Under the pieces are notes generated by a model. It did not search any database. It had not been told where the DNA came from and saw only the letters and a program-made list of their open reading frames with translations. Both the position numbers and the translations under genes were made by a program. From the IMG/VR virus record IMGVR_UViG_3300024358_000009, positions 1 to 64,000 of that record: a DNA stretch of 64,000 bases. The stretch is one strand, 5' to 3'. Numbering within the stretch: the first letter of the stretch is position 1; every line of letters begins with the position of its first letter. Shown one piece after another: positions 19,868 to 41,320 of this stretch.

Positions 19868-20383
19868 TTATTCTCCTGACCATATTTTTTCTTCTGGGCC
19901 TAATAATCTAGCTAAAGTAAATAAAAAATCGCTTAATCTATTTATGTATATAACAATGTTTTTAAGATATTGGTGAACTTCCATTAATTTAACTAAATCA
20001 ATTTCAACCCTACGACATACTGCTCTAGCAAGATGAATTTCGCAATGATTAAATGGTATAATAAAATTTTTAAGTGGCTTTAAATGTTTTGTCATCTCAT
20101 CAATTTTTTGCTCAAGTTGTTTAATGTGATCTTCTTTAATTCTTTCTTTTCCGGTAGCTATTTCAGCACCTATATCAAATAAATGTTTCTGTGTTTCAAC
20201 AATAAAATCGTAAATGTTTTGAACTTTAAGTTCTAATATATATCTTTGATTTACAAGACCTATTGAAGCATTAAGCTCATCCACGCTTCCAAGAAGTTGA
20301 ATATGTGGATCGGTTTTTGGAACACGCCCAACTTTTGGCAAAAGAGTTGTTCCATCATCTCCAGTTTTAGTATAAACCTTCAT
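19868..20383 (-). CDS. pduO: ATP:cob(I)alamin adenosyltransferase, PduO/MMAB type
   Basis: KVYTKTGDDGTT, GSVDELNASIG, LFDIGAEIA, HLARAVCRRVE, YINRLSDFLFTLAR. Confidence 0.92.
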   Translation of the reverse strand: MKVYTKTGDDGTTLLPKVGRVPKTDPHIQLLGSVDELNASIGLVNQRYILELKVQNIYDFIVETQKHLFDIGAEIATGKERIKEDHIKQLEQKIDEMTKHLKPLKNFIIPFNHCEIHLARAVCRRVEIDLVKLMEVHQYLKNIVIYINRLSDFLFTLARLLGPEEKIWSGE

Positions 20384-21023
20384 TTTTGCTCCAATCTAAG
20401 ATTTTTATCTTTGATTCCATACCTATTTTTGTAAAAGGAAATCCATGAAAGCCAAATGGTTTTTCATTATATTCTTCTGTTTTATGTTCTATTGAAAATT
20501 CAAAAGCCGTTCTTAAATCTGGAAATTTAAACTCGTTTTTTATTAATTCATCATAAGAGTGATAACATATTTCTAAATCTTCATTAAATATGATTGGTTT
20601 ATTTTGATATTTATTTGATATATGTTCCATTAATTTTTTTGACCTTAGACTAAAACCGCCATTGCCAACTTTATTTACATGATCATGATTTTTCCAAGGA
20701 GCACCAATATAATCATACTGTAAAAATTTTTCTGACCAAGAATCTGGATTAATTACAAATCCATCATATTGAATTAATAAAACATATTCTGTATTTATAT
20801 ATTTCACTAAATCACGCAAAATAAAAGCACTATATTCTTCCTTGCTATTTATTTTTTTTACTTGTATGAATTCTATTCTGTCTGTTTTTAGTTCATTTTT
20901 ATCAGATATAAATATACATCTTTTAAAATTTATACTTTGCATACTATATAACATGGCAGAAATTGCTTTTTTATGATTTAAGCAATCAACAGCACACAAA
21001 GTAATATTATTTAGTGAAATCAT
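20367..21023 (-). CDS. DUF5672-like protein (GT-A-like)
   Basis: LLIQYDGFVINP..W...FLQYDYIGAPW, VGNGGFSLRS, NED. Confidence 0.75.
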   Translation of the reverse strand: MISLNNITLCAVDCLNHKKAISAMLYSMQSINFKRCIFISDKNELKTDRIEFIQVKKINSKEEYSAFILRDLVKYINTEYVLLIQYDGFVINPDSWSEKFLQYDYIGAPWKNHDHVNKVGNGGFSLRSKKLMEHISNKYQNKPIIFNEDLEICYHSYDELIKNEFKFPDLRTAFEFSIEHKTEEYNEKPFGFHGFPFTKIGMESKIKILDWSKNEGLY

Positions 21024-21507
21024 AAAGACATATTAATCTTTTTGTATTAGAGTCAATAGCTATTTTTTCTAATATTGGTATTTCTTCAAACCATTCAAAT
21101 AAAGTTTCCTCACTTATATTATGATGACAATCATTTGGTCTATTCCACTTGTATGGAACTGATACTATGAGTTTATTAACTATTTTTTTAAGTTCATTAA
21201 ATACATTTTTTTGTCTTCCTTCAAAATGTTCAAATGCTTGTAAGCATATAGCTAAATCAAACTTATGATTGAATGTCCAAGGTGTAATTGTACAATCAAA
21301 TACATAATTTATATGTTTGTTATGTTGTTTTTCTATTCTTACGGAATTTAAACACAACGGAAAATATGAACATCCTAATTCTAAAATAGACAGTGGATTT
21401 AAATTTTTTGCAATTTCTATTACTTCTTTATAATAATTCCATCTTTTAACAAAATATTTGTCTTCTTTACATTTTTTATCATAATCTTCTTTTGTAACAA
21501 ATTTCAT
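21007..21507 (-). CDS. class I SAM-dependent methyltransferase-like
   Basis: ILELGCS, FDLAICLQAFEHF, LIVSVPY. Confidence 0.7.
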   Translation of the reverse strand: MKFVTKEDYDKKCKEDKYFVKRWNYYKEVIEIAKNLNPLSILELGCSYFPLCLNSVRIEKQHNKHINYVFDCTITPWTFNHKFDLAICLQAFEHFEGRQKNVFNELKKIVNKLIVSVPYKWNRPNDCHHNISEETLFEWFEEIPILEKIAIDSNTKRLICLYDFTK

Positions 21508-21899
21508 TTTTTAGGACTTTTTGTTTTTATTCCTAATTGCTTATATACATTTCTTGCTTTTGGATTGTCATCTATTGCTAATATAACTTTGTCCTTAATG
21601 CTTTCTGCGTGTTTCTTTTTTGATTCTAATTGTTGTTCTTTATTGTTTCCAATATTATTCATCATTAGTCTATTATATTTAATTCCTGATTTTTTTAAAA
21701 CTTTTGTTGTTTCTGATCTATCTGATTCTGGTCTTCCTGTAACTATATAAATTTTATTTGTTTTTGCTAATTCATTAACATAATCAATCATTTTTTTAAT
21801 TGGATATATACCATTACGAATAATAGTGTTATCTATATCAACAATAACTACTGTTGATTTGCTAAAGAATTTCTCAACTTGTTGGTAAAGGTTCAGCAT
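21504..21899 (-). CDS. HAD-superfamily phosphatase (PseT C-terminal-like)
   Basis: VDIDNT, IVTGR, AIDDN. Confidence 0.8.
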   Translation of the reverse strand: MLNLYQQVEKFFSKSTVVIVDIDNTIIRNGIYPIKKMIDYVNELAKTNKIYIVTGRPESDRSETTKVLKKSGIKYNRLMMNNIGNNKEQQLESKKKHAESIKDKVILAIDDNPKARNVYKQLGIKTKSPKK

Positions 21900-22095
21900 T
21901 GTATCGCCCCATTGTAATATTCTTTGTTGCAACAACATCCTTATTAGTAAATTCCCATATTAATCCATTATTAAGAATAACAGTAAATACTTTCTCTATT
22001 TCAGTGCCATATTCAGTAACTAACCAAATTCTTCCCCTACCTTTTGGAGTTTCTACTTCTAATTCTTGTCTTGGTTCATATATCACAATTGGCAT
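21874..22095 (-). CDS. conserved phage hypothetical protein
   Basis: ETPKGRG...EYGTE...IWEFTN.D.....NITMGR pattern. Confidence 0.65.
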   Translation of the reverse strand: MPIVIYEPRQELEVETPKGRGRIWLVTEYGTEIEKVFTVILNNGLIWEFTNKDVVATKNITMGRYNAEPLPTS

Positions 22096-22756
22096 TTTTA
22101 ATCTCTATCGCAGAATCTCTTCTGCATAAATCTTGATATAATTTTTTATCTTTCGACCATTCTTTGCCTGTCCACCACTCAAATCCATTCAATTCACTTT
22201 TATAAATACAGCATTCTTCGTAACCACCCATCATATAATAATAAATACACCCAGATTTTTTAGCTAAAGTAGTTTCAATTAGCGTACTAACATTTCCTAA
22301 AGAAAGTTGTGGTTTTTTATAATCCCACGCAAATTGAACTCCGACAAAAGATTTTTTAAAAAGCTTATAACAAACAAACCCTATCAATTCTGATTCATAA
22401 AAATATTGAATTGAATTTTCTAACATAAGCTCATTATCAAAAACATGTTCGCTAAGAAAACCTCTTTTTGTTTGATAACACTTTGATATTCTTTCAACAT
22501 CTTCCTTAGATGGTTTTCCTAATTGATATTCTATCTTTTTGCTTATTTTTTTTGTTTTTTTATGGCATTCTAGTTCTGACAAGTTATACCTTATTGATCT
22601 TGCTTGAAACCAATAATCGTTCCAAGGTAACCAACCATTTTCTAATAAATTATCTAAATCGTCATTAATTTCTGGGTATCCAAAAACACCACAGTGAATT
22701 AAATCTTGATTAGATATTTTTCCAAAACCATTTATATGATCAAAAAATATTTTCAT
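22076..22756 (-). CDS. arginyl/leucyl-tRNA-protein transferase-like (ATE1/Bpt family)
   Basis: LLENGW, C-terminal FAWDY....SLG....LIE...AK..G..YYYMMGGY..C.IYK...GFEW. Confidence 0.65.
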   Translation of the reverse strand: MKIFFDHINGFGKISNQDLIHCGVFGYPEINDDLDNLLENGWLPWNDYWFQARSIRYNLSELECHKKTKKISKKIEYQLGKPSKEDVERISKCYQTKRGFLSEHVFDNELMLENSIQYFYESELIGFVCYKLFKKSFVGVQFAWDYKKPQLSLGNVSTLIETTLAKKSGCIYYYMMGGYEECCIYKSELNGFEWWTGKEWSKDKKLYQDLCRRDSAIEIKNANCDI

Positions 22757-22757
22757 G

Positions 22758-22786
22758 TAAATATTTACACTTAATTAACGAATAAG
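22758..22786 (+). promoter_or_regulatory. repeated promoter motif TAAA-N16-ACGAATAAG
   Basis: Fills the divergent gap between 22756(-) and 22807(+). Confidence 0.75.
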
Positions 22787-22806
22787 TATAAAAAACAGGA
22801 GTTTAT

Positions 22807-23280
22807 ATGAATATTTTTGCATTAGATTTAAACACCAAACAAGCTGCTGAATGGCATGTAGATAAACATGTAGTCAAAATGCCATTAGAAAGTGCCCAAA
22901 TGCTTTGTACAGTTCTTAATCAACTTGGAGTTAAAACACCATATAAATCAGCTTATGCAAAACATCCATGCACTATTTGGGCAGGAGAAAGCATGGATAA
23001 TTTTATTTGGTTATGTGAACTTGGATTAGAACTTTGTAAAGAGTATACTTATCGTTATGAAAAAGAACATAAGTGTGAAGCTATTATTAAAGAGTGTTTA
23101 ACATATTCTTGTAAAGTTCCAAATAAAGGACTTACAAAATTTGCTCAAGCTATGCCAGAAGAATTAAAAAAAGACAATCCAATAGATGGTTATAGAGAAT
23201 ATTACATAAGGTGTAAATATCATATAGCATCTTGGAAAAAAAGAAATATTCCTTTTTGGTTTATAAAATATGAAACTTAA
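22807..23280 (+). CDS. pyrimidine dimer DNA glycosylase / DenV family protein
   Basis: MNIFALD...HVDKHVVKMPLESAQML, HPCTIW, YREYY. Confidence 0.85.
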   Translation: MNIFALDLNTKQAAEWHVDKHVVKMPLESAQMLCTVLNQLGVKTPYKSAYAKHPCTIWAGESMDNFIWLCELGLELCKEYTYRYEKEHKCEAIIKECLTYSCKVPNKGLTKFAQAMPEELKKDNPIDGYREYYIRCKYHIASWKKRNIPFWFIKYET

Positions 23281-23866
23281 CATCGTTACTGTTCTATGGA
23301 GAAAAAACTATATATTAGAACAGTATAAAACAATACCTAAAAAACCAGACATTAATTGGATTTTATGTAAAACAAATTTGTGGGGAAAGATACCAAATCA
23401 AATTTTATTTAATACAGAATTAAATACAATTGTTTTAGAAACTAAAATTAAAACTAAAAATAAAACAGAGCATATAACAGATTTTGTTTTAAAAATTAAC
23501 CATGGATTAAAAAATGTAGAACATGGTTTTTTTTATATTTTAGATGATGATAATTCATTTAATAATGAAATTTATAATGTATTTAATGAATATAAAAATT
23601 CTAATTATAAAATGATAATAGGAAATCAAATAAGAAATAAAAGAGGAAAAATTCTTTCGGCTCAATATCCAAAGCATGGATGTATAGATATGGGAAATGT
23701 TATTTGTTCAACAGATATTTTTAATAAAGTAGATTATTTTAATAACATAAACAAAAAAAATCGTTTATATGATTGGCAATTTTGGTTAGAATGTTTTAAT
23801 TCTATATCAAAAGATGATGTTTTGCTTTTACATAAAAATATTTTTAATTATAATGGATTAAGATAA
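23270..23866 (+). CDS. glycosyltransferase family 2-like
   Basis: FYILDDDN, IDMGN, DWQF. Confidence 0.6.
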   Translation: MKLNIVTVLWRKNYILEQYKTIPKKPDINWILCKTNLWGKIPNQILFNTELNTIVLETKIKTKNKTEHITDFVLKINHGLKNVEHGFFYILDDDNSFNNEIYNVFNEYKNSNYKMIIGNQIRNKRGKILSAQYPKHGCIDMGNVICSTDIFNKVDYFNNINKKNRLYDWQFWLECFNSISKDDVLLLHKNIFNYNGLR

Positions 23867-24516
23867 TGTCAGCTATAGGTGCTCACAAAATAACTGAAGA
23901 TTTTGAAAAAAAACTATGTGATTATACTGGTTCTCCATACGCAGTTGCTCTTGATAATATGAGCAATGCTTTATTTTTATCTCTTTATTTTGAAAAAAAT
24001 ATAAAAAAATCAATAAAAGAAGATTATATAATTATTCCATCAAGAACATATCCTTCTGTTCCTTGTGAAATAATTCATGCTGGACTTAAAGTTAAATTTG
24101 AAAATACTAATGAAAAAATGTTAAAAGGTGCTTACCAATTAAAAAATTCTAATGTTTGGGATTCGGCATTAAGATTTACAGCTGATATGTATATACCTAA
24201 TTCTTATATGTGCATATCTTTTACTGGTCCATATAAAATATTAAAATTAAGTAAGGGTGGTGCTATTTTAACAGATGATATAGAAGCTGTTAAATGGTTT
24301 AAAAGGGCTAGGTTTAGCGGAAGAAGAGAATGTTCTTATCATGAAGATAATTTTGATATGCTTGGTTGGAATTTTTATATGATGCCAGAATTAGCAGCAA
24401 GAGGATTATTACTTATGTCTGGCTTTTATAATAGTGATAATACAAAAAAACATATTGAAGATTTAGAATTGCCGTATCCAGATTTAAGCAATTTTAAAAT
24501 ATATAGCGAAAAATAA
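23866..24516 (+). CDS. DegT/DnrJ/EryC1/StrS PLP-dependent aminotransferase-like (short form)
   Basis: FEKKLC.YTG..YAVA..N.SNAL.LSL, WDSA, SFT..YKIL..SKGGAILTDD, GWNFYM. Confidence 0.8.
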   Translation: MSAIGAHKITEDFEKKLCDYTGSPYAVALDNMSNALFLSLYFEKNIKKSIKEDYIIIPSRTYPSVPCEIIHAGLKVKFENTNEKMLKGAYQLKNSNVWDSALRFTADMYIPNSYMCISFTGPYKILKLSKGGAILTDDIEAVKWFKRARFSGRRECSYHEDNFDMLGWNFYMMPELAARGLLLMSGFYNSDNTKKHIEDLELPYPDLSNFKIYSEK

Positions 24517-24517
24517 A

Positions 24518-25216
24518 ATGATACATATTTATGGTTTATGTTATAGGATATTAAAATATCCAGATGAAACTATAAAAAGACTAAGGGAAACTGCATCAGA
24601 AGACTTTCATTTAACATGTATTGAATCACGATCTTGTAACTCTGATAAATTTTTTGAATGGGGAATGGAATGTTTAAAAAATAAAAAAATTCAAAGATTT
24701 ATAACATCGAGCACAAATTCTAGAGGATATGGATTTAATTGGTCTATAAAAAATTTTCCGCCAGATAATTCTGAAGATTTTTTTATTATTACAGATTTAG
24801 ATTTGCTAGTTCCAAAAGATTTTGACTGGATAAAAGAAATAAGAGAAAAAATGAAAGAAAATGTTATATGCGGTTTTACATTAAGCAATGAAAACTATAT
24901 AAGTCCTAATTCTGGATGGCATGAAAAATATGTTAAAAAACATAAACTTTTTGGAATGTGGTTAACATCAGTTAAAACACTGTGTTTTATGGAAATATTA
25001 TCTAAAACAAGTTGTAATATACAAGATGTTATTTTAATAAAAGATATGGAAAAATATGGAAAAAGAGATATAATAGACAAAAAATTATATCATTTTGGAT
25101 GGGATTCATATAAAGATGATCCAGATTATTGGAAAGATAAAAAACCATTAGCTTGGCAACAAAAATCAGATAAAAATGATTTAGACAAAATTCCTGTATT
25201 TAAGGTTTATGAATAA
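24518..25216 (+). CDS. putative glycosyltransferase (GT-A-like)
   Basis: FIITDLDLLV DxD motif; sugar-gene context. Confidence 0.5.
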   Translation: MIHIYGLCYRILKYPDETIKRLRETASEDFHLTCIESRSCNSDKFFEWGMECLKNKKIQRFITSSTNSRGYGFNWSIKNFPPDNSEDFFIITDLDLLVPKDFDWIKEIREKMKENVICGFTLSNENYISPNSGWHEKYVKKHKLFGMWLTSVKTLCFMEILSKTSCNIQDVILIKDMEKYGKRDIIDKKLYHFGWDSYKDDPDYWKDKKPLAWQQKSDKNDLDKIPVFKVYE

Positions 25217-25818
25217 TGATTACTGAAAATTCTTTAAATATAGTAAAAAAAATAACTGAAAAAATTCCAAGTTTTCATCATCATTATCATATTCTATACG
25301 ATATTGCAAATAATATAAAAAAAGATACTATAAATTATGTTGAAATTGGTGCTTATGCTGGAGCTTCGGCAATATTAATGCTTCACAATAAAAATGTTAA
25401 AGTTATATCTATAGACATAGGAAAACCAATAGGAAAACAAAAAGTATTAAACAATATAAACATTTTTTTTAGTGAAGAAAGATTTAAATATATACAAGGA
25501 AATTCACAAAATCAAAAAACTATAGATGAATTATTGAAAATAACAAATGAAATAGATATTTTATTTATAGATGGAGATCATTCATTTGAAGGCGTAATCA
25601 AGGATTTTGAAAACTATTCAAATTTTGTATCAAAAAATGGTTTTATAGTTTTTGATGATTATAGGTGTCCTATATGCGTACAAGTAAAACCAGCAGTTGA
25701 TAAAATAGTTAAAGATTTAGACAAAAATAAATTTGAAGTGATTGGTGCAATGGAAAATATATATGGAGCACATCCTAAAAAAAATAAAGGAAATTGTTTT
25801 ATAGTTAAAAAAATATGA
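25216..25818 (+). CDS. class I SAM methyltransferase (Methyltransf_24-like)
   Basis: VEIGAYAGAS, DILFIDGDHSFEGV..DF, IVFDDY. Confidence 0.85.
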   Translation: MITENSLNIVKKITEKIPSFHHHYHILYDIANNIKKDTINYVEIGAYAGASAILMLHNKNVKVISIDIGKPIGKQKVLNNINIFFSEERFKYIQGNSQNQKTIDELLKITNEIDILFIDGDHSFEGVIKDFENYSNFVSKNGFIVFDDYRCPICVQVKPAVDKIVKDLDKNKFEVIGAMENIYGAHPKKNKGNCFIVKKI

Positions 25819-27086
25819 ATAAAATAAATATACTTATATTTCCATGCGGATCAGAAATAGGATTAGAAATTTTTGAATCTTTAAAATTTTTAAAAAACAT
25901 AAATATTATTGGTGGAAGCAGTATTGATGATCATGGAAAATTTGTTTTTAAAAATTATTATAAAAATTTTCCTTTTATAAATAAAAAAAACTTTATTCCG
26001 TTTGTAAAAAAATTTGTTAAAAATAAAAAAATAGATTTTATTTACCCTTGTATGGATTCGGTTTTATTTATATTAAAAAAATATGAAAAAAAAATTGGCT
26101 GTAAAGTATTGACATCTGATTTTAAAACAACAGAAATTTGTTTGTCAAAAGAAAAAACATATTTAAAATTAAAAAATGTAATAGATGTTCCAAAAATTTA
26201 CAAAAACATAAATGATGTTAAAAAGTATCCTGTATATTTAAAGCCAAAAATAGGATATGGATCAAGAAATCATTTTATAGCATATTCAAAAAAAGAAGCA
26301 AAAATTTTCTTAAAAAAAAGAAAAAATTATTTAATTTTAGAATTTTTAAACGGAAAAGAATATACAATAGACTGTTTTACAGATAAAAATAAAAATTTAA
26401 TTTTTGTAAACGCAAGACAAAGAGCAAGAATTTCAAATGGTATTAGCACAAATATAAAATTAATTAATAAAAAAATATTTTATAGTATAGCGAAAAAAAT
26501 AAACAAAACAATAAATTTAAATGGATCTTGGTTTTTTCAATTAAAAGAAGATTATAATAAAAAATTAAAACTTTTAGAAGTAGCACCGAGAATAGCAGGG
26601 TCTTCTGCAATATGTAGATATTTAGGAATAAATCTTTCAGAATTAACAATAATGAATGAAATTTATGACAATTTAAAAATTATAAAAAATAATTTAAAAA
26701 TAGAAACAGACAGATCTTTACAAACAAAACAAAAAGTAAATATAAAATTTAAATATGTTTACATAGATTTAGATGATACAATAATTTTAAATAATAAAAT
26801 AAATGAAAATATAATTGAATTGATATTTAATTTTATAAACAGAAACAAAAAAATAATTTTAATTTCAAGACATAAAAAAAATATAAATAAAACATTAAAA
26901 AAATTTAAAATAAATCATCTTTTTGATAAAATTATACATATTAAAAACAATGAAAAAAAAAGTAAATATATAAAAAACAAAAATTCTGTTTTTATAGATG
27001 ATTCTTTTTCAGAAAGACTGGATGTAAGTATCAATAAAAAAATAAATGTTTTTTGTGTTAATAGTTGTATGTGTTTAAAAGAATAA
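25815..27086 (+). CDS. ATP-grasp protein with C-terminal HAD-like domain
   Basis: YLKPKIGYGSR, EFLNGKEYTID, LLEVAPRIAG; C-terminal IDLDDT...FIDDSFSER. Confidence 0.85.
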   Translation: MNKINILIFPCGSEIGLEIFESLKFLKNINIIGGSSIDDHGKFVFKNYYKNFPFINKKNFIPFVKKFVKNKKIDFIYPCMDSVLFILKKYEKKIGCKVLTSDFKTTEICLSKEKTYLKLKNVIDVPKIYKNINDVKKYPVYLKPKIGYGSRNHFIAYSKKEAKIFLKKRKNYLILEFLNGKEYTIDCFTDKNKNLIFVNARQRARISNGISTNIKLINKKIFYSIAKKINKTINLNGSWFFQLKEDYNKKLKLLEVAPRIAGSSAICRYLGINLSELTIMNEIYDNLKIIKNNLKIETDRSLQTKQKVNIKFKYVYIDLDDTIILNNKINENIIELIFNFINRNKKIILISRHKKNINKTLKKFKINHLFDKIIHIKNNEKKSKYIKNKNSVFIDDSFSERLDVSINKKINVFCVNSCMCLKE

Positions 27087-27089
27087 CAT

Positions 27090-27638
27090 TTAAAAATTTT
27101 TTTTAATTCCGTAAAAATATAAATCTTTTGAATTGTAATTTGTTTCAAAACAATACTCTTTAAACATCAAATTTATATCAATTTGTTCTAAAAAATCTTT
27201 TTCTTCTAAATTTTTATAATAATCCCAATTTGCCAATGGAGAAGCTGCTTTATCATTTCTTTTTGTTCCATGTTCTGGTCTTCCTATTGTTGCACATGTA
27301 AAAAATAAAAGCCCATTAGGTTTTGTCATTCTGTACATATTAACAAATGTTTCTAACCAAAATGGATTGTGTTCAAAGCATTCACAAGAAGCTGTTGTAT
27401 CAAAAATATTGTCTAAATAATTTAACTTTTGCCCCTCACAAACTACATCAACACATTTTCCTTCTCCAACATCAACTCCAGTATAATCGCATTTTTCAAA
27501 AAAAACTCTTATTGTTCCATTTATATTTAAACTTCCTATTTCTAATACTTTTGAATGGATGAAATAATTAGGAAATTTATTTTTTATTTTTTTAACAAAG
27601 CTCATTTGTTCTGAATGAGACATAATTCTCTTTCGCAA
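27090..27638 (-). CDS. class I SAM methyltransferase
   Basis: VLEIGSLNING, YTGVD, CECFEHNP, TKPNG. Confidence 0.85.
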   Translation of the reverse strand: MRKRIMSHSEQMSFVKKIKNKFPNYFIHSKVLEIGSLNINGTIRVFFEKCDYTGVDVGEGKCVDVVCEGQKLNYLDNIFDTTASCECFEHNPFWLETFVNMYRMTKPNGLLFFTCATIGRPEHGTKRNDKAASPLANWDYYKNLEEKDFLEQIDINLMFKEYCFETNYNSKDLYFYGIKKNF

Positions 27639-27693
27639 AAATATTAGTTCATGGGGTATTTACTTTTTAGTTACTTTAATTAGGTAATGCAAC

Positions 27694-28200
27694 ATGAAAA
27701 ATAATGCAGAAACAAAAATTGCACTAAAACGCAATATAAAAGACTTAATAAGAATAGAAAGTGATTCAAATCTTATAGAAGATCCAGACTTTGGGGTTTT
27801 AAAAACAGATATTGGCTGGAAAGAAGAAGACTTTGTTGCATATGTAAGAAAAAAGAACACATCTATATACATATGTCAAATAAGTAATAGTATAATTGGA
27901 TATATAGCTTTCTCAAAAGAAAACGACATTTTAACAATAGATAAATTAGTTATTGATCCAGTTTTAAGAAAAAATGGATTTGGATCAACTTTATTGAACT
28001 TTGTTGAAAATTTAAACTTTTCAAAAATAATTGCTTATGTTAGAGAAAATGATGATGAAAGCATTTTGTTTTTTAAAAACAGAGGTTTTATTGCAAGACT
28101 ACAAAAAAATCATTATGGTTCTTCTATAGACGCTATAGTTTTTGAGAGAAATAAAAATGAAGAAAAAAAATATAAACCAACCAAAAGGAAAACTCGTTAA
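27694..28200 (+). CDS. GNAT acetyltransferase (RimI-like)
   Basis: IDKLVIDP.LRKNGFG..LL, VREND...LFFK.RGF, HY....DA. Confidence 0.8.
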   Translation: MKNNAETKIALKRNIKDLIRIESDSNLIEDPDFGVLKTDIGWKEEDFVAYVRKKNTSIYICQISNSIIGYIAFSKENDILTIDKLVIDPVLRKNGFGSTLLNFVENLNFSKIIAYVRENDDESILFFKNRGFIARLQKNHYGSSIDAIVFERNKNEEKKYKPTKRKTR

Positions 28201-28339
28201 TTGTCTTGGTTGGTGCAATAAAACATTTATTTCTCCAGACCCAACATCAATAAGGTTTTGTCCTAAGTGCAAAGACAAAAAAAGAGATATGTGTTTATCT
28301 AAATTTGAAACAAAAGAATTAAAAGTGAATTATGATTAG
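28157..28339 (+). CDS. small Zn-finger protein
   Basis: NCLGWCNKTFISP...FCPKC; paralog of 14749..14910. Confidence 0.65.
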   Translation: MKKKNINQPKGKLVNCLGWCNKTFISPDPTSIRFCPKCKDKKRDMCLSKFETKELKVNYD

Positions 28340-28637
28340 TTTTTTTAAAAATTTATTTTTTGGAGAACCAAGGTCAAATAAATGGCCAGCACTTAGAGAT
28401 AAAATAATAAAAGAAAACTGTGAATGTTTAGCCTGTGGAACAAAAAAAGAATTAACTTGTCACCATATAATACCTTTTAGCAAAAATAAAAAGTTAGAAC
28501 TTGAAGAATCTAACTTAGTAGTATTATGTAATACATGTCATTTTGTTTTTGGGCATTTGAAAAGCTGGAATTCATATAATAAAAATGTTATAAAAGACTG
28601 TAGAGAATATAGATTAAAAGTGGAGTATAGACCATGA
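28332..28637 (+). CDS. HNH endonuclease
   Basis: CLACG, TCHHIIP, NLVVLCNTCH..FGH. Confidence 0.85.
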   Translation: MISFFKNLFFGEPRSNKWPALRDKIIKENCECLACGTKKELTCHHIIPFSKNKKLELEESNLVVLCNTCHFVFGHLKSWNSYNKNVIKDCREYRLKVEYRP

Positions 28638-29002
28638 GCGACCCTGTTCCTGGAATATTTCAAAAAGCTGTAAATTTTACCAAAGCAGTTGTAAAACATG
28701 CTGCTACTGGTTTTCAGCGTGTTCCATTAAATGTATTCCATGACAGAATGAATACTTGCAATACATGTGAAAACAAAACAAACGAAGGCACATGCAAATT
28801 GTGTGGTTGTTTTTTAAACATTAAAAATACTTGGGCTTCTGAAAAATGTCCTGCCGGAAAATGGGATATATTTGTAAGTCCAACTCAGCCAGAAAATATT
28901 AATCCAAGTCAACCAAATACCATAACTTTTGATCAAGTTAGAAATAGCCCACAAAATCAACAAGGTGGTTGTGGGTGTGGCAAAAAAAATAATCCCACAT
29001 GA
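28634..29002 (+). CDS. Cys-rich hypothetical protein (DUF6171-like)
   Basis: R..TCNTC...TCKLCGCFL..K..WASEKCP..KW. Confidence 0.65.
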   Translation: MSDPVPGIFQKAVNFTKAVVKHAATGFQRVPLNVFHDRMNTCNTCENKTNEGTCKLCGCFLNIKNTWASEKCPAGKWDIFVSPTQPENINPSQPNTITFDQVRNSPQNQQGGCGCGKKNNPT

Positions 29003-29601
29003 TAGAAAAGTCATCAAATTTTAAAAATCTATTAAATATGAAATTTGGAAGATTAAAAGTTATAAAATTATCTAATAAAAAAAGTACAAATAGATCATAT
29101 ATATGGGAATGTAAATGTTCTTGCGGAAAAATTACTAATGTTATTACATATTCTTTGCTTTCAAAACGAACAAGAAGCTGTGGTTGCTTAAGAAATAAAG
29201 CTGCTCATAATAGAAATTATTTAGGTCAAATAACCGGAACAATTTGGAGCAATATTTTAAGGGGAGCCAGACAAAGAGGTATAAAGTTTTTTTTAACAAG
29301 GGAAGAAGCTTGGGAATTATTTATAAAACAGAAAAAAAGGTGTGCTTTAACAAACCAAAGACTTAGATTTAGAAGATATGTTAAAAAACAAAACGGAAAA
29401 GATATTTATTCAACTGGAACAGCTTCGTTAGATCGAATAAATAGTAAACTTCCGTATCAAAAAGACAATGTTCAATGGGTACATAAAGATATAAATTGGT
29501 TGAAAAACAAATTTTCGCAGGATAAATTCATAAATATGTGTCGATTAGTATATACTAATTCTAGGAGAAATAAAAATGCCACTAAAAGAATGTCAAAATA
29601 A
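28999..29601 (+). CDS. HNH-type homing endonuclease-like protein
   Basis: FGRL...WECKCSCG...SCGC, RCALT, SLDRINS...Y.KDNVQWV..IN..K. Confidence 0.8.
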   Translation: MIEKSSNFKNLLNMKFGRLKVIKLSNKKSTNRSYIWECKCSCGKITNVITYSLLSKRTRSCGCLRNKAAHNRNYLGQITGTIWSNILRGARQRGIKFFLTREEAWELFIKQKKRCALTNQRLRFRRYVKKQNGKDIYSTGTASLDRINSKLPYQKDNVQWVHKDINWLKNKFSQDKFINMCRLVYTNSRRNKNATKRMSK

Positions 29602-30055
29602 TGGTGTCAATGGTTGGAAATGGGGAGATCAAGGACATTGCTACACCGGTAAAGACGGTAAAAAACAAGCTATTAGACAAGGAGTGGCGATTGAAGGTCC
29701 AAAGAAATTTGCCGAAATAATGAAAACTGAATCGAATGAATGGGCTGGTAAATCTTTATATGATCAATTATCAAGCGATGAAAAATCTTTAGCCGATTCT
29801 TTGCTTGAACTGACTAAAAAAATTGGCCCTTTAGATAAATCAGAAGGAATTTGGGTTGGATATGAAAATTCAGAAAAAAATGAAAACAAAGATATTGGTG
29901 TTAAGTGTGCTAATTGTGCATTGCATGTTTCAGAAAATGTCTGTTCTATTTTAGACAACGCAATCGAGTCAGAAGGTGCTTGCAGATTTGCCGTAATTCC
30001 AGATGGATATGTATCTGCTAAAGTTAAAAAAGATATAAAGGATTTTTATTCTTAA
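29576..30055 (+). CDS. hypothetical protein with C-terminal HiPIP-like four-Cys motif
   Basis: KCANC...C...ACRF; N-terminal GWKWGDQGHCY module. Confidence 0.55.
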   Translation: MPLKECQNNGVNGWKWGDQGHCYTGKDGKKQAIRQGVAIEGPKKFAEIMKTESNEWAGKSLYDQLSSDEKSLADSLLELTKKIGPLDKSEGIWVGYENSEKNENKDIGVKCANCALHVSENVCSILDNAIESEGACRFAVIPDGYVSAKVKKDIKDFYS

Positions 30056-30759: not shown

Positions 30760-31038
30760 ATGAAAACGCATTACGCAAAAAGAAATGGAAAACCAGGACA
30801 AAGGTTTGAAACTTCTATAGAAAGTATTGTTTATCAAATATTTCCAGACGATTGTTTGTTAACGAAAAACGAAATACAAGAAAAAATAGCTTCGTATATA
30901 AAACAGAAGCCTTTTGAAGTTAATGGAAGAGTTGGCTCAAAAGAAATAGATTCTTGTATAGTCAATCTATGTCAAAAAGGTTATTTAAAGGAAATATTTG
31001 GAGTTAAACTAGAAAAGTTCATTAAAACTCTACCTTAA
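30760..31038 (+). CDS. hypothetical protein, possible winged helix
   Basis: AAGGAG RBS; LTKNEI...EID..I.NL...GYL. Confidence 0.55.
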   Translation: MKTHYAKRNGKPGQRFETSIESIVYQIFPDDCLLTKNEIQEKIASYIKQKPFEVNGRVGSKEIDSCIVNLCQKGYLKEIFGVKLEKFIKTLP

Positions 31039-31082
31039 AAAATAGTGTATTTAATAGCAGTAACTCTCTCAAAGGTGCTGCT

Positions 31083-31253
31083 ATGGCAATATATTATGAG
31101 ATATGGGGAATACTCCCTGATAAAAAGAAACGATCTCTCATAATGACTTATGAGGAAGATAAATGGCAACGAGCAGAGAAAAAAGCTGCCAGACTGATTG
31201 AAATGCAAATGTCTGGCGTTGTTCTCTTAGAAAAGCACTCTGGAAATGAATAA
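31083..31253 (+). CDS. hypothetical protein (56 aa)
   Basis: Hand-translated MAIYYEIWGILPDKK...; AAGGTG RBS. Confidence 0.55.
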   Translation: MAIYYEIWGILPDKKKRSLIMTYEEDKWQRAEKKAARLIEMQMSGVVLLEKHSGNE

Positions 31254-32307
31254 ATTAAATGTAGTTGCACCGATTAATCAACTTGGTTATGGAATAGTTT
31301 CAATAAATATAATTAAAGAACTAAACAAAAAATTAGATCTTTATTTATGGACTATTGGTGGAATAAATTGCAAACAAGAAGATATAAAACTTTTTAATCA
31401 TCTCGTTAAAAAAAATCAATTTTATGATCATACAATACCAAGTTTAAAAATTTGGCATCAAAATGATCTATCTATGCATCCTTCAGTTCAAAATAGATGT
31501 GCTTTTCCTATATTTGAACTTGAACCATTAACTAAACAAGAAGTCCATCATATGAATTCGATGGATAAAATTTTCCTAGCTACAGATTGGGCTGTTGACA
31601 TAGCCATTAAATCCGGTATTGATAAAGAAAAAATATACAAAACACCTTTAGGAGTTGATCAAAAAATCTTTTTTGCAAAACCAAAACAAGCTAAGGAAAA
31701 AATAACTTTCTTAAATATAGGAAAATGGGAAATAAGAAAAGGTCATGACATATTAATTAAAGCTTTTCAAAAGGCTTTTCCGTCAGATGATCAAGTTGAA
31801 TTAATAATGCATTGCGAAAACCCTTTTTTAACACCTCAAGAAAAAAATAATTGGGAATCTTATTATGCATCTGATAAAAGAGTAAAAATTAGTAATAGAT
31901 TTGAAACGCAAGAAGAATTATCTAATTTAATGAGTTATGCAGATTGTGGAGTTTTTCCTGCTAGAGCAGAAGGTTGGAATATGGAATTGGCAGAAATGCT
32001 TTCCATGGGCAAGTTTTGCATAGCAACAAATGCAACTGCTCATAAAGAATTTATAAATAAAGATATTTGCGAATTAGTCGAAGTTGGTCAGCTTGTAAGA
32101 GCATATGATAATAAATGGTTTCATGGACAAGGATATTGGCCTAACTTAGATGAAAAAACAATAAATCAAATTGCACAAAAGATGATAGTGATAAAAAACA
32201 AAATAGTGTCTGGCGAAAAAGGAAATCAAAAAGCTTCAGAGCATATGAAAAATTATACTTGGGAAAAAACAGCCGATTTAATTGTAAAGGCTATTTATGC
32301 AAATTAA
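31246..32307 (+). CDS. GT4 (GT-B) glycosyltransferase
   Basis: FLNIGKWEIRKGHD, ADCGVFPARAEGWNMELAEML. Confidence 0.88.
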   Translation: MNKLNVVAPINQLGYGIVSINIIKELNKKLDLYLWTIGGINCKQEDIKLFNHLVKKNQFYDHTIPSLKIWHQNDLSMHPSVQNRCAFPIFELEPLTKQEVHHMNSMDKIFLATDWAVDIAIKSGIDKEKIYKTPLGVDQKIFFAKPKQAKEKITFLNIGKWEIRKGHDILIKAFQKAFPSDDQVELIMHCENPFLTPQEKNNWESYYASDKRVKISNRFETQEELSNLMSYADCGVFPARAEGWNMELAEMLSMGKFCIATNATAHKEFINKDICELVEVGQLVRAYDNKWFHGQGYWPNLDEKTINQIAQKMIVIKNKIVSGEKGNQKASEHMKNYTWEKTADLIVKAIYAN

Positions 32308-32713
32308 ATCTTTGGAAGAACAGGATATTTTCAATGGTTATTCGGAATGCCTTAAAGAAATTGGTGTTTTTTTTATTTCAAGAGTAGAAGTCTTAAGATA
32401 TGTCGAAAGCCAATTAAAAACAGGTAATAAAATATTTTGTGCCATAGAAAATAAATCTGTTGTTGGAACAATAACAATTAATATTTACACTCAAAAAGAA
32501 CTTAAAAAAGGATATATAACAAATCTAGGTGTTGTTAAAAAATTTAGAGGTTATGGAATAGCATCTAATTTAATAGAACATGTTTATAATTACGCAAAAG
32601 AAAATTCATGTATTGAAATATCATTAAATTGTGAATCAGATATGATTTCTTTTTATGAAAAATTTGGATTTAATATTAGCGGTACATGCATGAGGAGAAA
32701 GATAGATGTCTGA
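32297..32713 (+). CDS. GNAT acetyltransferase
   Basis: GYITNLGVVKKFRGYGIA..LI, FYEKFGF. Confidence 0.85.
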   Translation: MQIKSLEEQDIFNGYSECLKEIGVFFISRVEVLRYVESQLKTGNKIFCAIENKSVVGTITINIYTQKELKKGYITNLGVVKKFRGYGIASNLIEHVYNYAKENSCIEISLNCESDMISFYEKFGFNISGTCMRRKIDV

Positions 32714-34407: not shown

Positions 34408-34411
34408 TTGC

Positions 34412-38756: not shown

Positions 38757-38928
38757 TTATTATATTTTTAATAGATATGCACCAGTAAATAAAGTTAGTG
38801 TTAAGTGTTCTTTTTGCAAATTATCTCATTTTATTGATAAAGAAATATTTGAAAAAAAAGAAGAAATAAATTGTGTTCATTGTAATTCTAAATTAACTTT
38901 TTTCTCTAAAGACAATTCTGTAAATTAG
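38749..38928 (+). CDS. Zn-ribbon protein
   Basis: CSFC and CVHC. Confidence 0.6.
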   Translation: MNDYYIFNRYAPVNKVSVKCSFCKLSHFIDKEIFEKKEEINCVHCNSKLTFFSKDNSVN

Positions 38929-39031
38929 TTAAGAATTTTCTGATTTCTTAATTGCCATCTTTAAAGAGATGGTGTAAAAATTCCAGTCCAAACTTATTGT
39001 CGAAAACCACATTTAAGGTGAGTGTCTTATC

Positions 39032-41320
39032 ATGTCAACAAAAGAGTTGCAAAAGTATACCGCTGTTTCTAAGTATGCAAGATGGATTGAAAAAGAACAA
39101 CGCAGAGAAACTTGGGAAGAAAGTGTTGATCGTGTTAAAAACATGATGATTGAAGCTTACCCACTTCTTGCAAAAGACATTGAAAAATATTATGGAATGA
39201 TCAAAGATCAAAAAATATTAGGTTCTCAACGAGCTTTGCAGTTTGGCGGAAAACCAATTTTTAAGCATAATGCCAGAATATACAACTGTTCAGCAAGCTA
39301 TTGTGATAGATTACGCTTTTTCCAAGAGTGTTTTTATTTGCTTTTATGCGGTTCTGGTACTGGTTTTAGCGTTCAAAAACATCATGTTGAGCTACTACCG
39401 TCTTTTTCAGAATTAAGGCTTAATAACTCAATTATTAAGCACCAAACCTATATTGTAGAAGATTCTATTGAAGGATGGGCGAACGCTCTCGGTGTCTTGT
39501 TATCATCTTATTTTGAAAAACCTGTTAAAGAATTTGATCAATTTAAAGACATTAATATTCATTTTGATTACTCAAAAATTAGAAAAAAGGGCGAACCTTT
39601 AGGTTTTGGTATAGGCAAAGCTCCTGGCCATGAACCTCTTCAAAAAGCCATTGAAAATATAAAAAACTTACTTGATAGATGCATAGCTGATAAACAATCA
39701 AAATTAAGAACTATTGACGCTTTTGATATAGTTATGCACTCGGCAGACGCTGTTATTAGTGGCGGTGTTCGTAGATCAGCCACTATTGCTCTTTTCTCTG
39801 CTGATGATGAATTGATGATTAATGCAAAAACAGGAGATTGGTTTTTTACTAATCCACAAAGAGGAAGGGCAAACATATCCGCTCTACTTCATCGTAAACA
39901 CACAAGTAAAGAAACTTTTGATAATTTATTTAAAGCAACAAAAGAGTTTGGTGAGCCAGGATTCTTTTGGGCGGATTTGTACGATGCTTTGTGTAATCCT
40001 TGTGTTGAAATTAGTTGGGTAACTAGATCTTATTATAAGAAAGATAGCGATGAACTTAAGCTTGCATTACTTGATTATGATGGTCCAATCACTACAAAAG
40101 AAAATTGCAAAGATGAAATGTCAGATAGCGATGTTGGCCTTTCAGGTTGGGGTTTTTGCAATTTGTCTACTATTAATGGCAAGACTATAACTTCAGTTGA
40201 AGATTTTTACCAAAGATGTGAAGCTGCTTCTTTTATTGGCACTCTTCAAGCCTCTTTTACAAACTTTCCATATCTAGGTAAAGTAACTGAAAATATTGCA
40301 AGAAGAGAGGCGTTGTTGGGCGTTTCTATTAATGGAATGCAGCACCACGCTGATATTTTATTAAATCCAGAAATTCAACAAAATGGTGCAAAAATAGTCA
40401 GACAGACAAATGAGAAGTACGCAAAAATATTAAATATTAATCCAGCAGCTAGAACTACATGCGTAAAACCAGAAGGTAATTCTGCTTGTTTACTTGGTTC
40501 TACTTCCGGCATTCATCCAGATCATAGTAAAAGATATTTTAGAATTGTTCAAGCAAACAAAGGCGAAGCACCTTATCAGTTTTTTAAATCTAAAAATCCA
40601 CAGGCTTGCGAAGAGTCTGTTTGGTCTGCAAACAAGACTGATGATTGCATAAGATTTTGTGTAGATAGTCAAGATGGCACAAAACTTAAGAGTCAAATAA
40701 ATGCAATTAATATGCTGGATACAGTTGTGTCTACATATAATAACTGGGTTGTTCCAGGCAAAAACGATGACCTTTGTGTTAGAAAAGAAATTAATCACAA
40801 TGTTTCAAACACAATTCATGTAGATTCTCATGAGTGGGAAAGTGTTTGCGATTATATTTTTAACAATAGGAATTATTTGGCTGGTATTTCTTTAATAGCT
40901 TCTAGTGGCGACAAAGATTACGAACAAGCTCCTTTTACAGCTGTTTATACATACGAAGAACAAGAAGAGATGTATGGCAAAGAAGCTGTTTCTGTTGCTA
41001 GAGAAATACAAGATAAGTTTTCGGATTATGGTTTTCCATCTTTATGGACTGCTTGCTCTTGTGCTTTAGGATATTTTGATCCGAAAACAGAAAGCGAAAA
41101 AAGTTATAAAAATATAATTATAAATTTTTCTAATTCTCATTTTAATGGTGATATAAAAAAGACTACATATGCTCTTAAAGATTCTTATAACATTGTTCTT
41201 TGGAATTCTTTAAAAGAAAGTTATATTAATGTAGAATATAAAGACATGTATGAAGAAAGTTCTACAATAAATGTTCAAAGCGAACTAGCTTGTGCTGGTG
41301 GTTCTTGCTTAACTCAATAG
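39032..41320 (+). CDS. nrdJ: class II adenosylcobalamin-dependent ribonucleotide reductase (RTPR type)
   Basis: GGVRRSA, NPCVEI, CNLSTI, TTCVKPEGN, GIHP, C-terminal ACAGGSC. Confidence 0.93.
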   Translation: MSTKELQKYTAVSKYARWIEKEQRRETWEESVDRVKNMMIEAYPLLAKDIEKYYGMIKDQKILGSQRALQFGGKPIFKHNARIYNCSASYCDRLRFFQECFYLLLCGSGTGFSVQKHHVELLPSFSELRLNNSIIKHQTYIVEDSIEGWANALGVLLSSYFEKPVKEFDQFKDINIHFDYSKIRKKGEPLGFGIGKAPGHEPLQKAIENIKNLLDRCIADKQSKLRTIDAFDIVMHSADAVISGGVRRSATIALFSADDELMINAKTGDWFFTNPQRGRANISALLHRKHTSKETFDNLFKATKEFGEPGFFWADLYDALCNPCVEISWVTRSYYKKDSDELKLALLDYDGPITTKENCKDEMSDSDVGLSGWGFCNLSTINGKTITSVEDFYQRCEAASFIGTLQASFTNFPYLGKVTENIARREALLGVSINGMQHHADILLNPEIQQNGAKIVRQTNEKYAKILNINPAARTTCVKPEGNSACLLGSTSGIHPDHSKRYFRIVQANKGEAPYQFFKSKNPQACEESVWSANKTDDCIRFCVDSQDGTKLKSQINAINMLDTVVSTYNNWVVPGKNDDLCVRKEINHNVSNTIHVDSHEWESVCDYIFNNRNYLAGISLIASSGDKDYEQAPFTAVYTYEEQEEMYGKEAVSVAREIQDKFSDYGFPSLWTACSCALGYFDPKTESEKSYKNIIINFSNSHFNGDIKKTTYALKDSYNIVLWNSLKESYINVEYKDMYEESSTINVQSELACAGGSCLTQ

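Follow-up and report, generated by a model that had tools for sequence, protein, structure and literature searches.

Monomeric, B12-dependent ribonucleoside-triphosphate reductases (RTPR) of the type typified by the enzyme of Lactobacillus leichmannii (PDB 1L1L) are known and abundant in viruses (PMC10547690, PMC12918982), and are reported as the commonest ribonucleotide reductases (RNR) of aquatic viruses, about half of marine viral RNRs (PMC12918982). Published work treats these viruses as wholly dependent on host B12 synthesis or processing (PMC10547690). In cellular systems, the PduO-type ATP:cob(I)alamin adenosyltransferase (ATR) is associated with particular client enzymes: the human ATR, MMAB, both makes adenosylcobalamin (AdoCbl) and delivers it to methylmalonyl-CoA mutase, whereas PduO of Salmonella and Lactobacillus is encoded in the pdu operon together with the AdoCbl-dependent enzyme it serves. 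Virus-encoded steps of cobalamin metabolism have been noted as well, namely cobS/cobT in cyanophages and cobaviruses (PMC6775973) and cobA in wastewater viromes (PMC11183165). Here we examine a large river phage that carries both a PduO-type ATR and an RTPR, and ask whether the two genes are likely to be functionally connected. We found no paper linking a viral adenosyltransferase to class II RNR.

The PduO and RTPR genes of the phage

The window, that is, the whole stretch of DNA that was analysed, comprises 64,000 nucleotides (positions 1 to 64,000) of the 206,326-bp IMG/VR record IMGVR_UViG_3300024358_000009. The record is a tailed phage, with terminase large subunit, portal and tail fibre, and with phage-type replication genes. 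The first-pass annotation had noticed a PduO-type adenosyltransferase and a class II RNR in the absence of NrdA/B, and had inferred a viral module securing AdoCbl for dNTP synthesis. The observation is confirmed, both open reading frames being present with the extents given in the table, and the absence of NrdA/B extends to the whole record, in which no match to PF02867, PF00268 or PF13597 was detected.

Table. Features of the phage genome considered in this work (coordinates in the window unless indicated otherwise)
Position	Strand	Feature	Observations
19868..20383	-	pduO, 171-aa PduO-type ATP:cob(I)alamin adenosyltransferase (N-terminal ATR domain only)	PF01923 Cob_adeno_trans, E 2.6e-47, 161.5 bits (cut-off 24), profile positions 1-170 of 171; TIGR00636 PduO_Nterm, 150.2 bits (cut-off 108.45)
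169794-170267 of the record		Second copy of pduO	88% identical
39032..41320	+	762-aa monomeric class II (adenosylcobalamin-dependent) ribonucleoside-triphosphate reductase, RTPR type	TIGR02505 RTPR, E 1.1e-48, 166 bits (equivalog cut-off 340.05)
19423..19866	-	147-aa CxxCxxCC (YkgJ-like) cysteine-cluster protein, 1 nt downstream of pduO	Structure-based match to YkgJ-family clusters, TM 0.79; motif visible in the translation
41331..42353	+	340-aa radical SAM/SPASM protein, 10 nt downstream of RTPR	PF04055 and PF13186
33035..33859	+	ThyX thymidylate synthase; marks the nucleotide-metabolism/replication block that holds RTPR	PF02511, E 4.2e-17
44996-56776		UvsX/RecA-like, DnaB, primase, exonuclease and a split DNA polymerase	

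The first gene belongs to the PduO-type family. A search of PDB recovered 37 relatives, including human MMAB (2idx, E 5.6e-23) and L. reuteri PduO (3ci1, E 1.8e-22), and all 29 family-invariant columns are kept in an alignment of 28 sequences. The N-terminal ATP-binding motif YTKTGDxGxT reads YTKTGDDGTT at residues 4-13, with K2, T5, G8, D9 and T13 invariant in the alignment. Furthermore, F107 and R120-A-V-C-R124-R125-V-E127 align to the FILPSG...CRAVCRRAE stretch of 2idx and thus appear to correspond to the Phe that displaces the lower ligand and to the Arg/Glu cluster of the corrin/ATP site (probably F170, R186, R190, R191 and E193 of MMAB); F107, R124 and E127 are invariant, and R120 and R125 are >=90% conserved. 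The one notable departure is the loop after P110, where the clade to which the phage belongs has PFNHCE, with a 3-residue deletion, instead of PGGxxxxxx, a difference of unknown effect in a loop that is not a formally defining feature of the family; similar short loops occur in the related viral or metagenomic sequences P0013, P0024, P0025, P0047 and P0083. Within the clade, dN/dS is 0.05-0.12 against members at dS 0.7-1.3, indicative of purifying selection. The record contains no match to PF02572 (CobA/BtuR type); the gene is of the PduO type.

The RNR is best described as the monomeric RTPR subtype of class II rather than the dimeric NrdJ. Although TIGR02505 is the only family hit, the score falls below the equivalog cut-off, whereas viral relatives in other lineages score 270-370 bits. 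The best match in PDB is 1L1L, both by sequence (E 1.9e-14, about 20% identity) and by predicted fold: the AF2 model (pLDDT 88.9, pTM 0.88) matches 1L1L_A with E 1.5e-28 and TM 0.63/0.67 over 753 columns, 16 orders of magnitude ahead of the class Ia/NrdJ hits (next hit 1.4e-12). The residues N85-C86, N322-P323-C324-x-E326, C376 and the C-terminal C754/C759 are invariant across 29 homologues and seem to correspond to the thiyl-radical loop, redox Cys pair and CxxxxC tail of the L. leichmannii enzyme (apparently C119, N406, C408, E410, C419, C731 and C736); the motifs NPCVE and CAGGSC are visible in the translation. The clade has, in addition, a ~32-residue insertion in the finger loop between C324 and C376. 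The cellular RTPR relatives come from the PVC group, Gemmatimonadota, Chitinophaga and others at 40-50% identity, the top hits being probably phage contigs binned into Flavobacteriales or SAR202 MAGs, and no host could be assigned.

This RTPR is the only RNR and the only recognisable B12 enzyme in the record. No radical-generating beta subunit or activase, thioredoxin, glutaredoxin, B12-binding domain, CobA/BtuR, CobS (no CobS_N match) or NrdD was found, and no Rfam family other than one tRNA, hence no cobalamin riboswitch, reaches its gathering score in the window. Nor are the immediate neighbours of the two genes shown to belong with them. The YkgJ-like protein adjoins pduO only in the nearest strain, but not in the complete 141,809-bp DTR genome G001 of the same clade or in other clades, and is accordingly rejected as a conserved redox partner. 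The pairing of RTPR with the radical SAM/SPASM gene is conserved in the clade, but related phages hold GlmS-like or PhoH genes at this position, so that a partnership with RTPR is not supported; an apparent fusion of the two genes, with an open frame of 1113 aa, in two records is dispelled by a TAG stop between them.

Co-occurrence of PduO and class II RNR in viral genomes

In this phage, pduO and the RTPR gene lie 18.6 kb apart on opposite strands, with about 30 unrelated genes between them, and are therefore not an operon; the module posited in the first-pass annotation is functional here, not physical. The pair is nevertheless conserved through the clade of this phage, in 7 of 8 records including G001, where the genes are about 13 kb apart. 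To find out whether the connection extends further, we examined the co-occurrence of the two genes across viral genomes, as the first-pass annotation had proposed. GenBank phages were not usable for this purpose because only 15 records match PduO, most of them short, unannotated 'phage' contigs from Listeria, Enterococcus or Salmonella lysates that look like host DNA, and we turned to IMG/VR.

All 9 other PduO-bearing IMG/VR genomes that are at least 90% complete carry a class II RNR, as do 12 of 12 at >=75% completeness (in one of these, NrdJ_Z at 535 bits), and none of the 34 other PduO-bearing records searched carries NrdB. In all nine PduO sequence clusters (55% identity) with a determinable RNR, this RNR is class II; against the ~66% class II share among marine viral RNRs (PMC12918982), this is roughly p 0.02, albeit without a proper base-rate control on PduO-free genomes of equal size and habitat. 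One further cluster, cluster 4 (14 loci from jumbo-phage fragments <=37% complete), shows no RNR in the available part of the genomes.

The two genes are also linked physically in many viruses. Among about 157 unique viral PduO loci, an RTPR lies within the available flanking sequence in 37, next to PduO on the same strand in 35 and 4-7 kb away on the opposite strand in 2. These loci span five PduO clusters and several gene orders: immediate adjacency occurs in three clusters (part of cluster 1, and clusters 3 and 17), with different gene orders and different intervening genes, and proximity within 7 kb in two more. At one locus the RTPR stop overlaps the PduO start, at another PduO is followed by RTPR 22 bp away, and in cluster 3 RTPR lies upstream of PduO in 18 of 19 loci. 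Only 1 of 80 cellular RTPR loci has PduO nearby, so the viral linkage is not simply copied from a common bacterial operon. In one viral clade (clade II), PduO is flanked in 38 loci by a 150-aa protein for which Pfam and a PDB profile search gave nothing, and which only a fold search identified as DUF4430/transcobalamin-beta-like. No match to the profile of the DUF4430-fold protein was found in any frame of the 206-kb record.

Importantly, the dependence runs one way. Most RTPR/NrdJ phages lack PduO (present in 1 of 24 sampled RTPR records, and in about 0 of 1170 GenBank phage records), so it is not required in general.

Possible roles of the viral adenosyltransferase

Taken together, these findings support the inference of the first-pass annotation and probably are best explained if the phage encodes a working PduO-type ATR that, during infection, converts host-acquired cob(II)/cob(I)alamin plus ATP into AdoCbl, the radical-generating cofactor of the only RNR of the phage, an RTPR that would reduce NTPs directly to dNTPs. 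The phage would thereby remove its dependence on the host's own capacity to adenosylate, or re-adenosylate, corrinoids. Both genes are intact, keep their catalytic residues and are conserved under purifying selection, whereas the enzymatic activity and the identity of RTPR as the client are inferred, as are, from family membership only, the AdoCbl dependence and NTP substrate of RTPR. Likewise inferred is that cobalamin, thioredoxin and the one-electron reductant (flavodoxin or free reduced flavin acting on 4-coordinate cob(II)alamin, as established for PduO-type enzymes) all come from the host, and that PduO may hand AdoCbl directly to RTPR.

Could the viral PduO instead serve host AdoCbl-dependent enzymes, such as methylmalonyl-CoA mutase, diol/glycerol dehydratase, ethanolamine ammonia-lyase or host NrdJ, or generally raise host AdoCbl as a metabolic auxiliary gene? 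Compatible with this view, pduO of the phage lies in a variable accessory-gene region, among glycan-modification genes rather than nucleotide-metabolism genes, the closest homologues on phage-like contigs also sit among sulfotransferase and sugar genes, and cobA has been listed as a generic vitamin AMG (PMC11183165). However, this scenario, which we consider unlikely, does not explain why every sufficiently complete PduO-bearing viral genome has a class II RNR and none has NrdB, or why RTPR and PduO are joined into operons in several independent PduO clusters; besides, the phage encodes no other B12-dependent enzyme.

It appears even less likely that the co-occurrence is incidental, the two genes being common cargo of large aquatic phages or having been co-captured once, with a neutral or decaying PduO. 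Some co-occurrence is indeed expected by chance given that class II is already the commonest RNR in aquatic viruses, and the comparison lacked a matched control set. Nevertheless, the low dN/dS at near-saturated dS, the retention of all invariant residues, the varied arrangements of the adjacent genes and the PduO tree, which needs several separate viral clades, all speak against this possibility; moreover, only about 10-17% of viral populations carry any RNR, in contrast to the 12 of 12 genomes above. The least likely alternative, in our view, is a non-catalytic or different role of the PduO homologue, for example sequestering corrinoid or producing AdoCbl as a signal that shuts host AdoCbl riboswitches. 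The shortened loop, which is specific to this viral clade group, could be taken to hint at such a role, in the absence of activity data, but all ATP-binding and corrin-site residues are conserved, no cobalamin riboswitch reaches the Rfam gathering score in the window, and the RTPR linkage is better explained by cofactor supply.

A tentative extension, which we regard as possible rather than probable, is that environmental viruses carry a dedicated, portable system of B12 acquisition and activation for their class II RNR, the fullest form of which would consist of RTPR, a membrane-anchored transcobalamin-beta-like corrinoid binder, a small membrane protein and PduO, with PduO acting as a chaperone that loads AdoCbl directly onto RTPR. 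Such a system would let these phages replicate in hosts that take up cobalamin but do not make or maintain AdoCbl, and would make viral infection a distinct sink and converter of B12 forms in natural waters; the phage described here would be a minimal, unlinked version with PduO and RTPR only. More generally, an ATR that tracks RTPR, and in some lineages a putative corrinoid-binding protein as well, would show that some phages control the last cofactor-activation step themselves, with implications for how B12 availability and chemical form constrain viral replication, which hosts such phages can use, and how infection reshapes the B12 pool on which most plankton depend.

Comparison with known systems

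The mechanism proposed here for RTPR is that of MMAB, which belongs to the same enzyme family and shares the active-site residues by alignment, but the client would be a class II RNR, a pairing that we could not find described and that would be the first case known to us of a PduO-type ATR dedicated to a ribonucleotide reductase; no MeaB/MMAA-like G-protein is present in the phage. Compared with PduO of the pdu operon, the phage protein consists of the N-terminal ATR domain alone, with no DUF336 domain, and the inferred client is an RNR, not a diol dehydratase; the genes are unlinked in this phage although they are linked in other viral lineages. By analogy, phage T4 carries both a class III RNR and its activase (NrdD/NrdG), so that an RNR and the enzyme that provides its radical-generating capacity are likewise encoded by one phage, but the chemistry differs, with radical SAM activation of a glycyl radical as against synthesis of a dissociable B12 cofactor. 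Finally, the B12-related viral auxiliary genes noted previously are chelatase-like subunits, or a bare list entry with no client assigned, whereas here a specific client is indicated by genome context.

Identity of the two ORFs

The first-pass annotation placed a PduO-type adenosyltransferase and an NrdJ in the window, and both ORFs are confirmed at exactly these positions (see the table). The 171-aa product of the minus-strand ORF matches the Pfam family Cob_adeno_trans end to end (E 2.6e-47, 161.5 bits, cut-off 24) and the NCBIfam profile TIGR00636 PduO_Nterm (150.2 bits, cut-off 108.45), and has 37 relatives with solved structures, including human MMAB (2idx) and Lactobacillus reuteri PduO (3ci1). 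In an alignment of 28 sequences, it keeps every invariant column, namely the ATP motif YTKTGDDGTT, D35-E36-L37-N38, F107, the segment R120-A-V-C-R124-R125-V-E127, and N148-R-L-S-D152. In the pairwise alignment to MMAB, F107 and the Arg/Glu segment fall on the stretch FILPSG...CRAVCRRAE, which appears to hold F170, R186, R190, R191 and E193, the corrin-site and disease-mutation residues. The one oddity is a shortened loop after P110 (PFNHCE in place of PGGxxxxxx) that is shared by a group of related viral or metagenomic sequences.

The only family match of the 762-aa product of the plus-strand ORF is TIGR02505, adenosylcobalamin-dependent ribonucleoside-triphosphate reductase (E 1.1e-48), although at 166 bits the score is below the equivalog cut-off of 340. 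By sequence, its only relative in PDB is the Lactobacillus leichmannii RTPR, 1L1L. An AlphaFold model built on 29 homologues (pLDDT 88.9, pTM 0.88) also hits 1L1L first (E 1.5e-28, TM 0.63/0.67 over 753 columns), whereas the next hits, class Ia and dimeric NrdJ, are at 1e-12. The catalytic set, C86, N322-P-C324-x-E326, C376 and the C-terminal pair C754/C759 (CAGGSC), is invariant across the 29 homologues. Thus, what had been annotated as NrdJ is more precisely the monomeric RTPR subtype, which makes dNTPs directly from NTPs. Relative to the abundant viral RTPRs of ~730 aa, the RTPR of the window clade has a ~32-residue insertion, modelled with high confidence, in the loop between the thiyl-radical Cys324 and Cys376; some relatives (the homologues P0134 and P0175) carry inteins with LAGLIDADG domains. 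The statement of the first-pass annotation that NrdA/B are missing from the window holds for the whole record: no Ribonuc_red_lgC, Ribonuc_red_sm or NRDD match occurs in 206,326 bp.

The phage genome and the context of the two genes

The record (31.7% G+C) is a tailed phage, with the terminase large subunit, portal and tail fibre genes located outside the window, and with DnaB helicase, primase, a UvsX/RecA-like protein, an exonuclease and a split DNA polymerase encoded within it. The two polymerase ORFs match the N- and C-terminal halves of the profile phrog_405, and the 221-aa ORF between them may be a mobile element or an intron-type insertion. Self-comparison shows that the end of the record is a collinear, 75-82% identical second copy of its first 59 kb, with the junction marked by an exact 127-bp repeat, so that the record is probably one ~149-kb genome run on into a related strain. 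The same doubling, with two PduO copies, is seen in IMGVR_UViG_3300024509_000007 (221 kb), and CheckV-style 'complete, linear' labels for such records are misleading. A relative of 141,809 bp (G001) has direct terminal repeats and is rated complete. The sequence occurs in many riverine metagenomes.

The pduO gene lies in a short minus-strand block with genes for a DUF5672 protein, a HAD phosphatase, an ATE_C-like protein and a YkgJ-like cysteine-cluster protein. The latter family is common in phages, and its member neighbours pduO only in the closest strain. The block is embedded in a large island of glycan or small-molecule modification genes that also includes a GT2-methyltransferase fusion, a DegT-like fragment (only profile positions 26-92 of 360), three methyltransferases, an ATP-grasp enzyme, two GNATs and a GT4. 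The RTPR gene lies 18.6 kb away on the plus strand, in the nucleotide-metabolism and replication block, with ThyX upstream, a radical SAM/SPASM gene 10 nt downstream, and a zinc-ribbon protein, UvsX, DnaB and primase following. The radical SAM/SPASM gene is conserved at this position within the clade but fits no NCBIfam subfamily (best E 1e-9), and related phages carry GlmS-like or PhoH genes in that slot. The two genes are therefore not an operon here. No thioredoxin, glutaredoxin, Rossmann-type B12-binding domain, CobA/BtuR or CobS is recognisable in the genome, and no riboswitch reaches the Rfam gathering score in the window. RTPR is the only candidate AdoCbl client that the phage itself encodes.

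Coordinates of features in the phage record and in other loci (L numbers denote individual PduO or RTPR loci)
Sequence	Coordinates	Strand	Feature
Window	4200-4273	+	tRNA-Met (CAT), the single tRNA-Met gene in the window
Window	17169-32713		Island of glycan or small-molecule modification genes surrounding pduO
Window	19423-19866	-	147-aa CxxCxxCC (YkgJ-like) cysteine-cluster protein, starting 1 nt after the pduO stop
Window	19868-20383	-	pduO, 171 aa
Window	22807-23280		Pyrimidine-dimer glycosylase-like gene, in the island
Window	30055-30546		Peptide deformylase, in the island
Window	39032-41320	+	RTPR, 762 aa
Window	39995-40160		RTPR residues ~327-375, loop containing the ~32-residue insertion
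Window	41331-42353	+	Radical SAM/SPASM protein (CNAKCWFC motif)
Window	52310-56776	+	DNA polymerase (phrog_405), split into ORFs 52310-54223 and 55151-56776
Window	54476-55141		221-aa ORF between the two polymerase ORFs
Record	117050-118800		Degenerate ~54-108-bp tandem repeats inside a 2164-aa minus-strand ORF
Record	about 120-133 kb		Terminase large subunit, portal and tail fibre
Record	149317-206326		Second copy of 1-58947
L156 (record G033)	58-1992		RTPR
L156 (record G033)	1992-2567		PduO
L180 (record G038)	2001-2513		PduO
L180 (record G038)	2536-4389		RTPR
L143, L156, L080	1418-1870, 2530-3039, 9397-9846, respectively		Protein of 150-170 aa with a predicted transcobalamin beta/DUF4430-like fold, next to PduO (also in 35 further IMG/VR loci)
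L122, L137, L065	1630-2004, 1631-2008, 4613-4990, respectively		124-aa SLOG/YAcAr (PF10686) protein, conserved together with a 46-aa ORF between RTPR and PduO (PduO cluster 3)
L143, L130	2647-2949, 2551-2874, respectively		WhiB-family regulator just downstream of the RTPR/DUF4430-like/PduO cassette
L244 (MAG Candidimonas sp., SCQX01000042.1)	3080-5997		Cellular RTPR locus with PduO directly downstream of RTPR

Conservation of pduO

Protein searches with the phage PduO identify a tight clade of about a dozen 90%-identity clusters at 79-100% identity, followed by a drop to below 50%. Within this clade, the Nei-Gojobori dN/dS against seven orthologues is 0.05-0.12 at dS 0.7-1.3, that is, the gene is under strong purifying selection. 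The nearest sequences outside the clade (P0013, P0024 and P0047) sit on phage-like contigs, again among sulfotransferase and sugar genes, and in the phylogenetic tree group with the window clade and with the PduOs of three other large viral records, G009, G011 and G012 (SH-aLRT 96).

Co-occurrence of PduO with class II RNR

The first-pass annotation inferred a viral module securing AdoCbl for dNTP synthesis and proposed the co-occurrence of pduO and nrdJ across phage genomes as a test. The GenBank phages were uninformative for PduO because only 15 records match, most of which look like host contamination, whereas 1170 records match RTPR/NrdJ. In contrast, IMG/VR includes 391-459 stretches that encode PduO relatives, from which we retrieved about 157 unique loci and searched every available parent record of 30 kb or more. 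Within the window's clade, 7 of 8 records carry RTPR at 75-82% identity, the exception being a 23%-complete fragment. Outside the clade, the PduO-bearing record G010 (328 kb, complete) has a dimeric NrdJ (TIGR02504, 535 bits, above cut-off); G012 (408 kb, complete), G009, G013 and G014 have RTPRs scoring 303-336 bits; and RTPRs are also present in G029, G032, G033, G034 and G038 (all >=99% complete) as well as in G028, G030, G031, G035, G036, G037 and G039, with no NrdB in any of these. Overall, 9 of 9 other genomes at >=90% completeness, and 12 of 12 at >=75%, have a class II RNR, and 0 of 34 records have NrdB. The records without an RNR are fragments of 8-74% completeness, and several of them belong to the same species-level groups as RNR-positive genomes in which the two genes lie 60-80 kb apart.

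When the viral PduOs were clustered at 55% identity, all nine clusters whose RNR can be determined turned out to be class II; one cluster of jumbo-phage fragments (cluster 4, <=37% complete) remains undetermined. About 66% of marine viral RNRs are class II and only about 10-17% of viral populations carry any RNR (PMC12918982). Against that base rate, albeit without a matched control set, the result is unlikely by chance, roughly 0.66^9 = 0.02, even conditioning on the presence of an RNR.

The reverse does not hold, and PduO is not a general requirement of RTPR phages. Of the 24 RTPR-bearing viral records sampled by RTPR similarity, only G038 has PduO, although the sample included complete genomes with 50-52% identical RTPRs and the same downstream synteny as the window. 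The association runs one way, as expected for an accessory that needs a client but is needed only with some hosts or conditions.

Gene order

The strongest evidence comes from gene order. A search with an RTPR profile detects an RTPR ORF inside the retrieved flank in 42 of 167 PduO loci, which is 37 of about 157 unique loci, and in 35 of these 37 the RTPR lies next to PduO on the same strand, nearly always just upstream. In locus L156 (from G033, 135 kb, DTR), RTPR and PduO share stop and start, whereas in L180 (from G038, 88 kb, complete), PduO is followed 22 bp later by RTPR. In L143 (from G029), a 150-aa gene and a 43-aa gene lie between RTPR and PduO, and in PduO cluster 3, 18 of 19 loci read RTPR, a 46-aa ORF, a 124-aa SLOG/YAcAr protein, then PduO. 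In L045 and L013, from 230- and 396-kb contigs, RTPR lies 4-7 kb from PduO on the opposite strand. Adjacency or proximity thus appears in five PduO clusters, with different orders and different intervening genes, which points to repeated selection for linkage rather than one inherited cassette. The linkage is rare in cells: only 1 of 80 bacterial or archaeal RTPR loci (+-6 kb) has a PduO nearby, in a Candidimonas MAG, and this locus could be a bacterial counterpart of the viral cassette, or a prophage.

A protein with a predicted transcobalamin-like fold in viral clade II

The 150-170-aa gene next to PduO in viral clade II encodes a protein with an N-terminal membrane anchor or signal and four invariant cysteines. 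It occurs beside PduO in 38 loci, including genomes where RTPR is far away, and is accompanied by a one-TM ORF of 43-51 aa. Pfam and a PDB profile search are silent on this protein. Its AF2 model (pLDDT 72.9), however, best matches the beta domain of transcobalamin (7qbe, 2bb5, 5no0; Foldseek probability 1.0, E 3e-3, TM about 0.5), the DUF4430 protein 3u7z, intrinsic factor, and AlphaFold-DB DUF4430 clusters (E 4e-10, TM 0.70-0.76). Given that DUF4430 is the C-terminal domain of the vertebrate B12 binders (PMC4350170), this is a candidate viral corrinoid-binding protein. It is not encoded in the genome analyzed here, but it shows that viral PduOs sit in B12-handling contexts. The WhiB-family regulator located just downstream of the cassette suggests actinobacterial hosts for that viral clade.

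Possible role of the viral adenosyltransferase

It is established that PduO-type ATRs bind cob(II)alamin four-coordinate, which allows reduction by flavodoxin or free reduced flavin, and transfer the adenosyl group from ATP; that MMAB hands AdoCbl to its mutase; and that RTPR uses AdoCbl as a dissociable radical initiator and thioredoxin as its reductant. We infer that the phage PduO adenosylates host-imported corrinoid, including forms such as hydroxo- or methyl-cobalamin, cob(II)alamin released by RTPR inactivation, or the products of AdoCbl photolysis, and thereby keeps RTPR supplied during the burst of DNA synthesis, with the corrinoid, the electrons and the thioredoxin coming from the host. 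A plausible selective reason would be infection of hosts with little or no adenosylating capacity.

Other scenarios can be considered, namely that PduO serves host enzymes, that the co-occurrence is incidental, or that PduO has a non-catalytic or signalling role. None of these, however, explains the repeated RTPR-PduO fusion and the absence of class I systems as well as the cofactor-supply model does. The interpretation of the first-pass annotation is supported by the comparative test it proposed, with three corrections: the RNR is of the RTPR subtype, there is no physical module in this genome, and the dependence is one-way. In the absence of biochemical proof, we consider the functional link likely rather than demonstrated.

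Relationship to known systems

Full-text searches, confined to open-access papers and bioRxiv such that prior description elsewhere cannot be excluded, detected no paper that links a viral adenosyltransferase with class II RNR. The closest items are a statement that RTPR viruses must infect hosts that synthesise or modify B12 (PMC10547690) and a list entry of cobA among wastewater viral AMGs (PMC11183165). Both enzymes described here are members of known families; what appears to be new is the pairing of a PduO-type ATR with a ribonucleotide reductase, carried by viruses and in places extended by a protein with a predicted transcobalamin-like fold.
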